The translations under genes and the position numbers were made by a program. Below are positions 17,054 to 33,699 of a DNA stretch of 64,000 nt, in pieces. This stretch comes from Macrostomum lignano. Its lineage: Eukaryota. A model generated the notes under the pieces. It ran no database searches, had not been told where the DNA came from, and was given only the letters and a program-made list of their open reading frames with translations. Within the stretch, counting starts at the first letter, position 1. Each line of letters begins with the position of its first letter. The stretch spans positions 1 to 64,000 of the forward strand of contig NIVC01001410.1 in the NCBI GenBank assembly GCA_002269645.1, read 5' to 3'.

Positions 17054-20000
17054 TCAGCTTAGCTGGCTGGCATTCGTCTTTGGCAGCGGCGTCGTCATCA
17101 GTGCAGCGGCGCCTTTATCGCTGCCGCCCGACGCTGGCCGTGGCGGGGCGCTGTTGGTGCCCGCAGCCGTGGCGGAGGCGCTGTTGGTGCCCGCAGCCGT
17201 GGCGGAGGCGCTGTTGGTGCCCGCAGCCGTGGCGGAGGCGCTGTTGGTGCCCGCAGCCGTGGCGGAGGCGCTGTTGGTGCCCGCAGCCGTGGCGGAGGCG
17301 CTGTTGGTGCCCGCAGCCGTGGCGGAGGCGCTGTTGGTGCCCGCAGCCGTGGCGGAGGCGCTGTTGGTACCCGCAGCCGTGGCGGAGGCGCTGTTGGTGC
17401 CCGCAGCCGTGGCGGAGGCGCTGTTGGTACCCGCAGCCGTGGCGGAGGCGCTGTTGGTGCCCGCAGCCGTGGCGGAGGCGCTGTTGGTGCCCGCAGCCGT
17501 GGCGGAGGCGCTGTTGGTGCCCGCAGCCGTGGCGGAGGCGCTGTTGGTGCCCGCAGCCGTGGCGGAGGCGCTGTTGGTGCCCGCAGCCGTGGCGGAGGCG
17601 CTGTTGGTGCCCGCAGCCGTGGCGGAGGCGCTGTTGGTACCCGCAGCCGTGGCGGAGGCGCTGTTGGTGCCCGCAGCCGTGGCGGAGGCGCTGTTGGTGC
17701 CCGCAGCCGTGGCGGAGGCGCTGTTGGTGCCCGCAGCCGTGGCGGAGGCGCTGTTGGTACCCGCAGCCGTGGCGGAGGCGCTGTTGGTGCCCGCAGCCGT
17801 GGCGGAGGCGCTGTTGGTACCCGCTGCCGTGGCGGAGGCGCTGTTGGTGCCCGCAGCCGTGGCGGAGGCGCTGTTGGTACCCGCTGCCGTGGCGGAGGCG
17901 CTGTTGGTGCCCGCAGCCGTGGCGGAGGCGCTGTTGGTGCCCGCAGCCGTGGCTGCCGGCGGATTGGATCCAGCCTATAGAGGCGAAGATTAAAATTAGG
18001 AATATATGATTTCGGTAGAGCCTTTATTCATATTAGCTCAATAGGAAATTAAATAGCTATGAGCAACAGCAAAATTCTAAATACTTTTTGTTCCATAAGT
18101 ATTGTAAAAACGTGATTGAGTGACTACAAAATGTCATCTTAACTCACTCGGGCAGTTGACTCCTCCACCATTCGCTGGAGTGCGCTGCTTCCGGCTTGGC
18201 GGTACCAGTCCTCATGGACATGGTACGAGTCGCGAGCCACCTTTGGCGTATGGTACAGCCGATCCGCGACAACCTGCGGGTTTTCACCCGCTTGGACAGC
18301 CTGGAAATGCAAAATGTAAAATTTTATGAAATTAAAAACTCTAATTAAGTTTTTTTTAAATCCGCTACTACATCCCATTTTTTTTTAGTTTTGGCTCATT
18401 TCAAGATTGATGATATTTGGTACATAATATAAGGCTTACAGAAGAGAGATAAGAGCACGAACATGCTTAGAACATGATCTGCGTGGACATTTTATAGATA
18501 GCTAAGATGCTTACCTTCGTTTCCACGAACACACGAAAGTTCGTGCACGTAACGTTAGCCAACAGAGGGCTAAATCTTGTCCGATGTTCTCTGAACATGC
18601 TTTCAAACTCACCGTATTTAAATTTCATAAAGGGCTCGCTGCCGTTCAATGCCGCTCCTGCAACTTCAGTTTCACGATGCTGCAGCAAACGAAGCAGCAG
18701 GCTACGACATTCTTGCACATTCACCTTGGCGGCGCCGAAGTACGCCATGGTTTTGTGCTTAGCAACCTGGATTAAAGTAAACAGGGTGCCTAGGGTGAGA
18801 GGCAGTATTAGCTACTCTGCGGAACTTAAACAAAATGACCCGATAGGCTCTGCATATGCTATAGAGAGTATCAATTACTCTCATTAACTAGTAGCCATGC
18901 TATTTAAGTGTTTTGTGTACTTGGTGCAGTCTTAGCCCTTCGATAGATACGAGCTAAGCTATCCGGAATTTGTATAGCCATTATGGAATTAGTGTATAGA
19001 TTTTGCAATTGAGCTTTTGGAGTGATCCACTTAGTGTGATATATAGTGGATAGATACTAAGATCCATATACTAAAAATGAAAATCTTGCTTGCTTGCTTG
19101 TACGAAATCGATTTTCTCCTGAATGGCTGGACCGATTTTCTTCGAACTTGCACTGTTCGATCAGAAATTTTTCCGTGACGGTACATGCATCTTGGCTAAG
19201 AAATTGCTCAATGTTAAAGGGATTAAATATTCGAAAAACATGCTTTTTTGCAAAGGTCAAGCATTGAAATGCATTGTAAGAATGCTAGCAGAAAAACTGA
19301 CTGGTTGAATTCTGATTCTAAAATAGATTGCATCACAATACACAAGACACTCAATTGAATTGCGTCACAGCGTTGAGTGTGAAAGCATAGCACAGTACTC
19401 AATTTATATTGCGTAACCATATTGTTAACTTTTATAGAGACTGGTACTGACTTGCCTAAGAAATTGATTATGTCATCATTCATAACTGCTTCGTGACTTT
19501 TTACTCTACCTGACTTTGTGTGAGTGTTGAACTATTTAAGTGGTACAAATTCACTGATAACTTCGATGAGAGCTAGCCTAGAGCTGAACAGACCAGACTG
19601 CTAATGCAGCAACCTGGGTTCGAATCTAAGTGTATGATTAGTAGATTAGTGTCTGAAAAGTAGTAGTGTAAAATTTTTTATTAAAAGCTAAATAAAAACA
19701 CTTAGATTACTGCACTCCATAAGCCAAGGATTATTGCTATTAAAAAACCAAGTATTAATGCACTTGATTAATCAAGGATTATTGCTATTAATAAACCAAC
19801 GATTACTGCACTCGATAAACCAAGGACTATTGCTCTTGGCAAACCAAGGATTACTGCACTCAAGAAGTCAAGGATTATTGCTATTAATAAAACAAGGATT
19901 AATGCACTTGATTAATCAAGGATTATTGCTATTAATAAACCAAGGATTACTGCACTCGATAAACCAAGGACTATTGCTCCTGGCAAACCAAGGATTACTG

Positions 20001-32000: not shown

Positions 32001-33699
32001 TCTCTCTCTCTCTCTCTCTCTCTCTCTCTCTCTCTCTCTCTCTATCTCTCTCTCTCTCTCTCTCTCTCTCTCTCTCTCTCTCTATCTCTTTCTCTCTCTC
32101 TCTCTCTCTCTCTCTCTCTCTCTAAGTCTGAAGTCTGAGTGCTACCGCTACACAATTTGCCTCCGTTGTTCTTCGCCTTCGTCATTTGATCCTGGGACTG
32201 AGTCTGCCTTTAATCGTCACATAACATCTCGAAATTGTGACCATGACCATCAAATACAACGGTCTGTAAGTTACCATCGAGTGTTTGCATCATCAGGAAA
32301 AGTCAGTTGAATCCGCCGCCTCAGTTATTTGGCTCTCACATTGAAACTTGAAGTAGACATAAAGCCATAGGAGTGAGGGACCACAACCACCCATATTTAA
32401 AATATTTCAATGAGAACTGCAGGAGAATGGGGATCAGAACTGCAGGAGAATGGGGATCAGAACTGCAGGAGAATGGGGATCAGAACTGCAGGAGAATGGG
32501 GATCAGAACTGCAGGAGAATGGGGATCAGAACTGCAGGAGAATGGGGATCAGAATTGCAGGAGAATGGGGATAGGAATCGCATAAGAATTGGAGTTAAAT
32601 GGGTGTTGATCTGCATGAAGAAACTAAATTTAATGCTTATGATACTTATAAACAGATTGGCATACCTGCTAGTGGCCTGCTGCTTTGACTTCTAGCCGGA
32701 GTACTTGATAACCCAGCGCAGGTGTTTTGCGACGGCTTTGGAGTTGTTGTTGAAATCCGCCATCTTACTTTCGTAGACTCGGCGGTGGCAGTCTTTCACG
32801 TGTTGCGCAAATCTTGAGTTTCGTACAATACAGGGATTATTTCGACCGTTTGGGCACTCGTAGCTCTTTCCCATCTCTTGCCTTCTTGCCTTCTTGACTC
32901 GCGCCATTTTTAGCTCTCGGGGATGACCCGCCTCGTGAGGCTGACACGATGCTGGCGCCGCTGCCCGAGCCGTAGCCGTAGCTGGGCGTGCTGTAGGCGC
33001 CGCTGCCCGAGCCGTAGCCGTAGCTGGGCGTGCTGTAGGCGCCGCTACCCGAGCCGTAGCCGTAGCTGGGCGTACTGTAGGCGCCGCTGCCCGAGCCGTA
33101 GCCGTAGCTGGGCGTGCTGTAGGCGCCGCTGCCCGAGCCGTAGCCGTAGCTGGGCGTACTGTAGGCGCCGCTGCCCGAGCCGTAGCCGTAGCTGGGCGTA
33201 CTGTAGGCGCCGCTGCCCGAGCCGTAGCCGTAGCTGGGCGTACTGTAGGCGCCGCTGCCCGAGCCGTAGCCGTAGCTGGGCGTACTGTAGGCGCCGCTGC
33301 CCGAGCCGTAGCCGTAGCTGGGCGTACTGTAGGCGCCGCTGCCCGAGCCGTAGCCGTAGCTGGGCGTGCTGTAGGCGCCGCTGCCCGAGCCGTAGCCGTA
33401 GCTGGGCGTGCTGTAGGCGCCGCTGCCCGAGCCGTAGCCGTAGCTGGGCGTACTGTAGGCGCCGCTGCCCGAGCCGTAGCCGTAGCTGGGCGTACTGTAG
33501 GCGCCGCTGCCCGAGCCGTAGCCGTAGCTGGGCGTACTGTAGGCGCCGCTGCCCGAGCCGTAGCCGTAGCTGGGCGTACTGTAGGCGCCGCTGCCCGAGC
33601 CGTAGCCGTAGCTGGGCGTATACTGAGGTCTGCCACCCTGCGGAACCGGCAATGCGCTCGGTCAACGGTGCTGGTCCTGCCGGATGAGCTGCTCAGCAC
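17054..33699 (-). CDS. Intron-rich tyrosine recombinase (Crypton-like). Best-supported exons: <=33699-32705 (repeat + C2H2-like finger), 31781-31725, 31687-31599, 31539-31426, 31289-31218, 29639-29490, 29013-28845 (one frameshift), 18766-18515, 18300-18148, 17974-17054
   Basis: Splicing the three 3' exons (all phase 0, GT-AG) gives [15 protein letters not shown]...[43 protein letters not shown], the K ... xxxR ... H ... Y pattern of YR catalytic domains. Candidate box-I Arg in ECAARIGPF (about 28870). N-terminal [26 protein letters not shown]. The four exons at 31.2-31.8 kb join in consistent phase. Exons at 29.7-30.8 kb and 18.8-19.0 kb are unresolved; the C-terminus may extend to about 16805. 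Confidence 0.72.
17150..17952 (-). repeat. 30-bp GC-rich minisatellite, ~27 copies, encoding ([10 protein letters not shown])n in the last YR exon
   Basis: Exactly two units per 60-nt line; in frame and stop-free from the acceptor at 17974 to TGA at 17056-17054. Confidence 0.9.
19705..21905. repeat. 48-bp satellite (two 24-bp subunits; CCAAGGATTACTGCACTCGATAAG + CCAAGGATTATTGCTATTAATAAA)
   Basis: Directly visible; source of the NQGLLLLI artefact ORFs. Confidence 0.95.
21948..22190. repeat. 18-bp repeat (GATGCTTGCTATCTGGGG)n, copy A
   Basis: Same unit as 28140-28650. Confidence 0.85.
22340..23390. repeat. 22-23-bp satellite (ATCATAGAAGCGTCATGTAAACA)n
   Basis: ATCATAG recurs at 22921 and 22944. 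Confidence 0.95.
24326..24359 (+). repeat. Interstitial telomeric repeat (TTAGGG)5
   Basis: Five perfect TTAGGG units plus TTAG. Confidence 0.9.
25325..28060. repeat. 22-23-bp satellite (AAAGAGCCACCATGTCAAACATT)n, ~2.7 kb
   Basis: Directly visible. Confidence 0.95.
28140..28650. repeat. 18-bp repeat (GATGCTTGCTATCTGGGG)n, copy B
   Basis: Period of 18 (28201, 28219); source of the GDACYL ORFs. Confidence 0.95.
30015..30655. repeat. 24-bp minisatellite (GCGCTGCTGGCTACCACATCTTGA)n
   Basis: Directly visible; lies in a putative YR intron. Confidence 0.95.
30893..31205. repeat. 23-bp minisatellite (AGAACTGCAGGAGAATGGGGATC)n, copy A
   Basis: Same unit as 32411-32580; starts right beyond the donor at 31217. 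Confidence 0.9.
31975..32123. repeat. (CT)n microsatellite
   Basis: Directly visible. Confidence 0.97.
32411..32580. repeat. 23-bp minisatellite, copy B
   Basis: Period of 23 (32413, 32436). Confidence 0.9.
32950..33622 (-). repeat. 42-bp GC-rich minisatellite, ~16 copies, in the first putative YR exon
   Basis: All three - strand frames are open across the array: ([14 protein letters not shown])n, ([14 protein letters not shown])n and ([14 protein letters not shown])n. Confidence 0.92.

Follow-up and report, generated by a model that had tools for sequence, protein, structure and literature searches.

Goodwin (2003) is reportedly a source on recombinase-only Crypton DNA transposons. Cryptons are DNA transposons that carry a recombinase only (Kojima & Jurka 2011, PMC3212892), and they show direct repeats of 4-6 bp that reflect microhomology, with no terminal inverted repeats (TIRs) (PMC3212892, PMC13465315). 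Animal Cryptons (CryptonA) match the Pfam family DUF3504 at E≤8e-12 and are reported without a C-terminal domain, CryptonS termini are reported as TATGG, domestication of Crypton recombinases has occurred several times and cost them catalytic residues, and Cryptons were not reported from Platyhelminthes in a 2011 survey (all PMC3212892). Here we describe a tyrosine-recombinase locus on the minus strand of a 64,000-nucleotide stretch of Macrostomum lignano DNA (positions 1 to 64,000 of contig NIVC01001410.1, here C1410; the stretch is called the window below). We conclude that the locus is probably a decayed copy, unable to encode an active enzyme, of an intron-bearing member of a Crypton-like flatworm tyrosine-recombinase family.

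The best-preserved part of the locus consists of three minus-strand exons at 18766-18515, 18300-18148 and 17974-17054, each of a length divisible by 3 and in phase 0 as read from the sequence, with borders CAG/GTT...AAG/GTAAGC, CAG/GCT...CGA/GTGAGT and TAG/GCT...TGA (GT/AG introns, donors GTAAGC and GTGAGT, acceptors CAG and TAG). Joined, they translate into the peptide quoted in an earlier, model-made reading of the letters alone (the original prediction), followed by 27 copies of a 30-bp repeat, and the sequence and the exon boundaries of paralogues bear these three exons out, as do the profile E-values for the first two. We searched the 764-Mb, 5269-contig M. lignano assembly, and scanned all open frames of at least 12 codons on both strands of the window against a profile built from 20 family members. 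The profile matched just four pieces of the window: the K exon (18515-18766, E=5.5e-17), which runs from the hairpin Lys (KHKT) through TxxR; the Y exon (18148-18300, E=1.1e-4), which holds the His and the nucleophile Tyr at a spacing of 9; a middle exon (28864-29070, E=8.2e-6), which encodes the second half of the core-binding (SAM-like) domain and is 55-59% identical to its C527 counterpart by tblastn and tblastx; and an open reading frame (ORF) with the family's first zinc finger (33807-32695, E=3.9e-7). In the genome, the 135-amino-acid K and Y peptide matches at least 75 places, the closest of which (two on C749, one on C527) show 64-79% identity in the K exon and 62-67% in the Y exon, with identical exon boundaries; the nearest relative of the window copy is 71% identical at the amino-acid level. 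Between the window and C527, nonsynonymous divergence (dN) is 0.21 and synonymous sites are saturated (proportion of differences, pS, 0.77), so the two diverged under purifying selection, and such values are what copies that descend from a lineage under selection would show. Six homologues from other assemblies (P0015, P0016, P0018 and P0020-22) end in read-through of GT[AG]AG right after VET[KR], so that the intron at this position is old. Minisatellites with more than one open frame crowd the surrounding region, and the exons might on that ground be dismissed as chance open frames in repeat-rich DNA; against the at least 75 homologous places, the profile value of the K exon, the conserved intron positions and the homologues in other assemblies, we count this explanation as already refuted and give it practically no credence.

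Evolutionarily, the family is small in current databases. A HMMER scan with a 776-amino-acid relative retrieved 22 proteins among 1.84 billion representative proteins, and among the ten of these that were looked up the only named ones were M. lignano hypothetical proteins, the rest coming from environmental or Logan contigs; a 776-amino-acid M. lignano hypothetical protein at NCBI matches residues 230-640 of a relative in this genome with 100% identity. Pfam gave no Phage_integrase or DUF3504 match for the window peptide, for P0001 or for any of the 20 members, searches of PDB sequences with the spliced peptide and with a 750-amino-acid relative gave no match, the 20-member profile found only zinc fingers among PDB sequences, and word-indexed protein searches returned nothing beyond self and one relative. 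Current domain models thus miss the family, and its copies appear just as "hypothetical proteins". The 20-member alignment nevertheless contains four conserved blocks, F-x-F-x-x-G-N-A-[SH]-R-x-D-[VI]-x-x-N-[AV]-T, H-K-T, N-T-[AS]-[YF]-R-x-[YF]-[IV]-E-T and E-R-L-x-H-x-x-x-V-A-x-Q-S-Y, and residues K5 (KHKT), R78 (TNFR), H101 and Y110 of the window peptide all stand in invariant columns, in agreement with the roles first proposed for them. Most members have Thr in place of the first His of the HxxR motif (His-II), C2334 has Ser there and P0010 has Arg; the replacement of H by T had been correctly noted for the window and extends across the family, so that it is, judged from the alignment, a family trait and not a lesion. 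His-II is also missing from topoisomerase IB and from telomere resolvases.

Structurally, an AlphaFold2 model of the full-length member P0003, made with the 20-member alignment, reached a predicted local distance difference test (pLDDT) score of 80.5, with 266 residues at 90 or above. Compared with the PDB by Foldseek, this model had tyrosine recombinases as its eleven best matches (probability 0.94-1.0, 346-378 aligned columns), the best being XerA (5hxy, E=2.6e-4, probability 1.0), with Cre (1f44 and related entries, target-normalised template-modelling score of about 0.5 over about 360 columns) and the Tn1549 integrase also among the matches. In the model, HKT lies between the short strands E389-391 and E403-405, as the hairpin Lys would, and the GNAxR block follows a helix, as in box I. 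The spacing from the second Arg to the His is 25 residues and from the His to the Tyr 9, and in XerD and Cre the corresponding spacings are 23 and 9. From the fold matches together with the conserved motifs, we take the family to have a recombinase fold and the R-K-R-H-Y catalytic set, and the model predicts a two-domain Cre/Xer-like arrangement of core-binding and catalytic domains. Recombinase activity, with cleavage and strand exchange via a 3'-phosphotyrosine, is predicted for the family. XerA, Cre and the Tn1549 integrase are its best structural matches over both domains and have Arg-I, the hairpin Lys, xxxR, His and Tyr in the same order and at the same spacing as the family; the family differs from them in sequence (9-16% identity), in its added fingers, repeats and PWWP domain, in being eukaryotic and spliced, and in having Thr or Ser for His-II. 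Ranks 12 and 13 of the Foldseek matches were the smallpox and vaccinia topoisomerases IB, which have the catalytic-domain fold in common with the family and whose pentad, R-K-R-H-Y, lacks the His that opens HxxR; they align over the catalytic domain alone (about 210 columns) with scores weaker than those of the recombinases, and the family, unlike them, shows transposon behaviour with defined ends.

Functionally, the domains around the recombinase set the family apart. The first finger is CHHC-like: three members match the Pfam family zf-U11-48K (best E=8.6e-5, which falls below the certainty of the curated cut-off), and the second is a C2H2 finger, as found with the profile against PDB sequences. 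The low-complexity tail of C527, of both C749 copies and of C2334 continues without a change of frame into ...WP..G..WWPA[IM]VC...VHVQFFDEPP..., which in C2334 matches the Pfam PWWP family (PF00855) with 28.2 bits (cut-off 25.6, E=2.7e-6) and in C527 with 22.5 bits (E=1.7e-4). With the C527 PWWP as query, such a domain was found 0.2-2.2 kb downstream of recombinase exons on the same strand at about 18 loci, and most subfamilies other than subfamily D, which is described below, carry a C-terminal PWWP. The C2334 locus (L031 2875-7411) has a three-ORF plan, with repeat, finger 1, finger 2 and core-binding domain in the first, Arg-I, K, SxxR, H and Y in the second, and repeat and PWWP in the third. 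From these copies, the ancestral protein would have begun with a low-complexity repeat and two fingers, the CHHC-like one ahead of the C2H2 one. Next towards the C terminus would come the helical core-binding domain and the catalytic domain, in which GNAxRxD provides Arg-I and HKT the hairpin Lys, followed by T/SxxR, the His and the QSY with the nucleophile Tyr; another low-complexity repeat and a PWWP domain would close the protein, and this last domain might tether the recombinase to methylated chromatin. Most close copies are broken: on C749, the Arg-I codon has become TGA and the Y exon is frameshifted in either copy, and most others carry stops or frameshifts. In subfamily B (four copies, C2583, C2584, C2184 and C675), HKT, TxxR, H and Y are kept and the Arg-I exon is cut to its last third (...DVVNCTVADGIRWLEDPDKELK), which is a second, independent loss of Arg-I. 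Copies of subfamily C are 70-88% identical in their coding parts only, and their element ends are not definable. Upstream of C527, the most complete paralogue, an ORF of long interspersed nuclear element (LINE) type with RNase H and a C-terminal Cys-His motif is inserted (L025 4500-5213), and this insertion may explain that the C527 finger exons were not found within 7 kb.

Measured against this plan, the window copy is defective at several points. The Arg-I exon was not found anywhere in the window in any frame, either with the family profile or by tblastn with the C527 Arg-I exon, a query that matches more than 20 other genomic loci and none in C1410; about 80 residues of the catalytic domain are lost with it. 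The profile scan likewise found no window counterpart for profile positions 220-282 or so, the first core-binding helices, or for positions 352-447, Arg-I included. The 9.7-kb Helitron that interrupts the locus does not hide the exon, because its ends are exact at 19063 and 28788 and once it is excised in silico, the K exon is only about 371 nt away from the middle exon; the equivalent interval in C527 is about 1060 nt and holds an Arg-I exon of roughly 255 nt. An exon that had been expected between 28845 and 18766 was found by neither profile nor tblastn. In the DNA alignment, the middle exon has a frameshifting 26-nt deletion relative to C527, with TAA in frame before the GTAAGG donor near 28846. 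Downstream of the gene, a broken PWWP remnant (16934-17022, minus strand) consists of VFAYWQCGKLWWPAMV (17022-16975), in a different frame from the tail, and YDPPTRDWVSTV (16969-16934), which shares the frame of the tail; compared with C527, some 20 codons are deleted between the two, and both come after the TGA that ends the tail at 17054. The remnant gives no Pfam PWWP match, and the window is absent from the genome's PWWP matches. Lacking the Arg-I exon and the first core-binding exon, with a 26-nt deletion and a broken PWWP, the window copy cannot encode an active recombinase, it has no intact ORF of the kind that a domesticated host gene would keep, and it is presumably not expressed.

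These defects bear on two other explanations. The locus could be an intact, expressed, intron-rich recombinase gene, of host origin or domesticated, whose remaining exons, box I among them, have gone unrecognised, and the clean K, Y and tail exons with canonical splice sites, the strong past purifying selection and the zinc-finger and middle exons in the right order on the right strand would all suit such a gene. We regard it as improbable, given that six-frame searches of the window recovered neither an Arg-I nor a first core-binding exon although the former is found at more than 20 other loci, that the conserved frame of the middle exon reaches a TAA after the 26-nt deletion, and that the PWWP has both lost its frame and suffered an internal deletion. 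The Arg of CAARIGPF (28883), which the original prediction had offered for box I as part of a plausible catalytic set kept in this copy, lies in the wrong frame of the real middle exon, a frame that has a stop 29 codons upstream and is conserved in no relative; with the Arg-I exon missing, that claim falls. Marginally better placed, and still unlikely, is an Arg-I-less, catalytically dead but still expressed DNA- or chromatin-binding derivative, comparable to the Crypton-derived DUF3504 genes. The intact K and Y exons speak for it, as do subfamily B, in which HKT, TxxR, H and Y likewise persist although the Arg-I part of the exon is gone, and the repeated domestication of Cryptons with loss of catalytic residues (PMC3212892). 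What was lost here is more than a single residue, though, as about 80 residues of the catalytic domain are gone, frameshifts affect the exons next to the gap and nothing intact is left of the PWWP, with neither a second copy nor an orthologue available to reveal constraint. The DUF3504 genes themselves (ZMYM2-4, QRICH1, KCTD1 and WOC) resemble the family in having a recombinase-derived domain within multi-domain, intron-bearing zinc-finger proteins, and catalytic residues are lost in some family copies too; they differ in being single-copy conserved orthologues without Tyr and Arg-II, whereas Tyr, Arg-II, His and Lys are kept here, and the family copies are many, mostly broken and without DUF3504 similarity.

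Mobility is seen in subfamily D, the copies of which were read as a 7504-bp element with a single long ORF of 750 amino acids and 5' tandem duplications of the ORF start. The copies on C33, C73, C217 and C903 (open frames of 750 or 751 amino acids) are 98-99.8% identical over a sharply bounded block of about 7.5 kb, with flanks that are unrelated over 10 kb on each side. Genome searches with the element's ends found six copies with a common 5' boundary (those four, C740 and C2731), five of which also have a common 3' boundary, C903 having no match there. The element starts CCAT(A/C)CTTTCCAAATCG and ends ...CCTGTAATGGAAAAGCC, and CCAT stands at both junctions in C33, C73 and C217, the three copies read at both, and likewise at the 5' junction of C903; the host sequence past the 3' end starts with CCAT in C33 and C217, and in C73 the CCAT spans the 3' junction. 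The C33 copy is nested in another dispersed repeat, uninterrupted copies of which read ...gtaggccCCATtgttg... with a single GCCCCAT, so that the occupied site has a GCCCCAT core at both junctions against one in the empty-site paralogue. This comparison is the signature of recombination between a short element core and a like core in the target, and it shows that the element integrates by recombining the core at its joined ends (GCC-CCAT) with that of the target; for this one lineage, Crypton-like behaviour is shown directly, and the element looks recently mobile. The element may be excised as a circle with the junction ...GGAAAAGCC/CCATAC..., in which the joined ends would present short inverted arms (TGGAAAAG and CTTTCCA) around a CCCCAT(A/C) core. 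In the window, neither of the D-type termini occurs, even with 3 mismatches allowed.

The D element also speaks to a further explanation, namely that the window exons belong to the recombinase of a DIRS- or Ngaro-type retrotransposon, which would come with a reverse transcriptase. Degenerate ORFs that are possibly retroelement-derived lie just upstream of the window gene on the other strand (33889-35227), and the LINE-type RNase H lies upstream of the C527 paralogue. Yet the complete D element is one long ORF, and reading of the ORFs in its 7504 bp revealed no reverse transcriptase or RNase H and no DDE transposase, nor does the three-ORF C2334 locus contain reverse transcriptase or RNase H; the ORFs upstream in the window run opposite to the gene and gave no Pfam match; and the D element has no TIR or long terminal repeat (LTR), its ends being 4-bp direct repeats, not split direct repeats or inverted terminal repeats. 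We consider a retrotransposon origin very improbable.

Several smaller observations concern the D copies. In the 5' part (positions of about 1970-4200; L021 6860-9091), the first 87 codons of the ORF are duplicated in four or five tandem 444-bp units. An NCBI gene model joins two upstream exons (…GAFVMYNDENGKSWIGCVGK…) to the ORF, and the seemingly intronless D lineage therefore probably has 5' introns as well; a Tudor-like N-terminal domain suspected in the upstream exon had no Pfam support and was set aside. At the right flank of C73 (L022, about 7094-7115), host ATGGAAAACACTGTAATG and the element's own AGTGTTTTCC are perfect inverted repeats of each other over 10 bp, and the target may resemble a recombinase binding site or may be a fragment of another copy.

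Set beside Cryptons, the family shares a tyrosine recombinase without reverse transcriptase, the absence of TIRs and LTRs, introns in some members and many decayed copies, and the D element adds 4-bp direct repeats at both ends together with target microhomology in the empty-site comparison. Read on the other strand, the terminal CCAT(A) gives the TATGG of CryptonS, which may be a coincidence. The family differs in its N-terminal CHHC-like and C2H2 fingers, in the C-terminal PWWP of most subfamilies and in the Thr or Ser that replaces the first His of HxxR. We see about an even chance that it represents an undescribed eukaryotic tyrosine-recombinase transposon lineage of Crypton-like action, without DUF3504 or phage-integrase similarity, marked by this set of fingers, PWWP and Thr or Ser for His-II, with at least one lineage still mobile in M. 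lignano at a GCCCCAT-type core, and with Arg-I-less copies (the window and subfamily B) that possibly include domesticated non-catalytic derivatives. The suggestion made at the outset, an undescribed flatworm recombinase element or a host recombinase, therefore stands at the level of the family (fold, mobility, and neither a Pfam model nor a paper found to cover it) and fails as a description of an intact gene at this locus; the copies, ends and empty sites that it called for were obtained for the D element and not for the window's own subfamily, which has no definable ends.

Given many dispersed and disabled copies, a low ratio of nonsynonymous to synonymous change and one mobile lineage, we read the window locus as a relic, best assigned to the intron-bearing, PWWP-type branch and later struck by a very young Helitron. 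Several points weigh against this reading. The window's own subfamily has no near-identical copies or definable termini, so its nature as a transposon, as opposed to a host gene family, is drawn from its relatives, and the C749 pair (C749:14000-33999 and 167000-186999, the same pseudogene in each) is an inverted segmental duplication of more than 13 kb at 94-98% identity, 135 kb apart, and not a transposition. The family has no detectable similarity to DUF3504/CryptonA or Phage_integrase, a comparison in which the Pfam models served as proxy for known Cryptons. Modelled alone, the K and Y fragment of the window scored poorly (pLDDT 61) and had no meaningful Foldseek matches. The 135 codons of the same two exons are stop-free and keep every invariant residue, and the parallel with subfamily B hints that they may still be used in some Arg-I-less product. 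Finally, divergence beyond detection, or an assembly error, could in principle account for the missing exons.

Animals have few transposons that carry a recombinase only, these are poorly understood, and the 2011 survey was without flatworm Cryptons (PMC3212892); the family would add a lineage that is invisible to current domain models. Fusion of a recombinase to a PWWP reader would amount to built-in chromatin tethering, which lentiviral integrases obtain through LEDGF/p75 (PMC4176367). We found no reports of a recombinase-PWWP fusion and no papers on Cryptons in Macrostomum or on PWWP-bearing recombinase elements. M. lignano is a flatworm used as a transgenesis model, and the near-identical 7.5-kb copies, with defined ends and a target core, offer a testable site-specific integration system in it. 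For annotation, the window locus should be entered as a relic and not called a functional recombinase gene, with the young, abundant Helitron family documented beside it.

That Helitron, 9726 bp on the plus strand at 19063-28788 in the intron between the middle and K exons, was proposed in the original prediction and is confirmed by its termini and by more than 40 genome copies at 97-100% identity, which end exactly at 19062/3 and 28789. Its termini read TCCATATAC... and ...GTCCCCCAACGGGGGGCGAAGATTGCTAG, with 5' TC and 3' CTAG, a hairpin stem (CCCCC/GGGGG) 12 nt before the CTAG, insertion between A and T and no target-site duplication. It resembles Helitrons in these termini, in the GC hairpin and in its many near-identical copies, and differs in that the ORF listing of the insert contains no long ORF, only frames derived from minisatellites (no homology search for Rep/helicase was run), and it therefore appears non-autonomous. 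Its body consists mostly of 18-, 23- and 24-bp minisatellite arrays. The family is very young and abundant. A unit of roughly 140-470 bp occurs twice in the insert, at 19124-19263 and 24796-24935, and 24377-24326, which at the DNA level matched sequence just ahead of the Arg-I exon of C527, was rejected as a (TAACC)n microsatellite.

Among the remaining features of the gene, the tail exon (17054-17974, minus strand) consists of the 30-bp tandem repeat (x27) and ends in the stop TGA at 17056-17054, and a low-complexity tail is found at the matching position in C527, C749, C2334 and the D elements. The zinc-finger exon (MARVKK...; 32764-32907, minus strand) is 33-51% identical to C749 by tblastx; the finger itself (32862-32785) is real and homologous to the family's first finger, with a resemblance to the CHHC type (U11-48K-like). 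Ahead of it and in frame lies an N-terminal low-complexity region (32954-33620, minus strand) of 15.9 copies of a 42-bp tandem repeat, and paralogues C749 and C2334 likewise have an Ala/Pro/Thr- or Gln/Pro-rich repeat in frame ahead of the finger. A possible remnant of the second (C2H2) finger at 29559-29621 (minus strand) lacks the first Cys and is not significant (profile E=6.6), and the "ASWNAFIGW" stretch at 31284, taken for SAM-like, has no similarity to the family by profile. Overall, five homologous exons and the PWWP remnant are supported, where ten or more exons had been proposed. The interval between the finger and middle exons may hold further repeat insertions: closely related 23-bp minisatellites, GCAGGAGAATGGGGATGAGAACT and AGAACTGCAGGAGAATGGGGATC, lie at 30892-31206 and 32413-32572, together with a 24-bp array at 30015-30654 and (CT)75 at 31974-32123. 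Upstream of the gene, three consecutive plus-strand ORFs in shifted frames (33889-35227) contain stretches (…FYLLPKIHK…GRPIVSG…) reminiscent of the reverse transcriptase of a retroelement; a Pfam search of these ORFs gave no match, and they are probably a decayed retroelement that bounds the gene on this side. Directly downstream of the relic gene lies a long, imperfect (CAGA/CTGT)n array (15860-16390), in which all frames are open.

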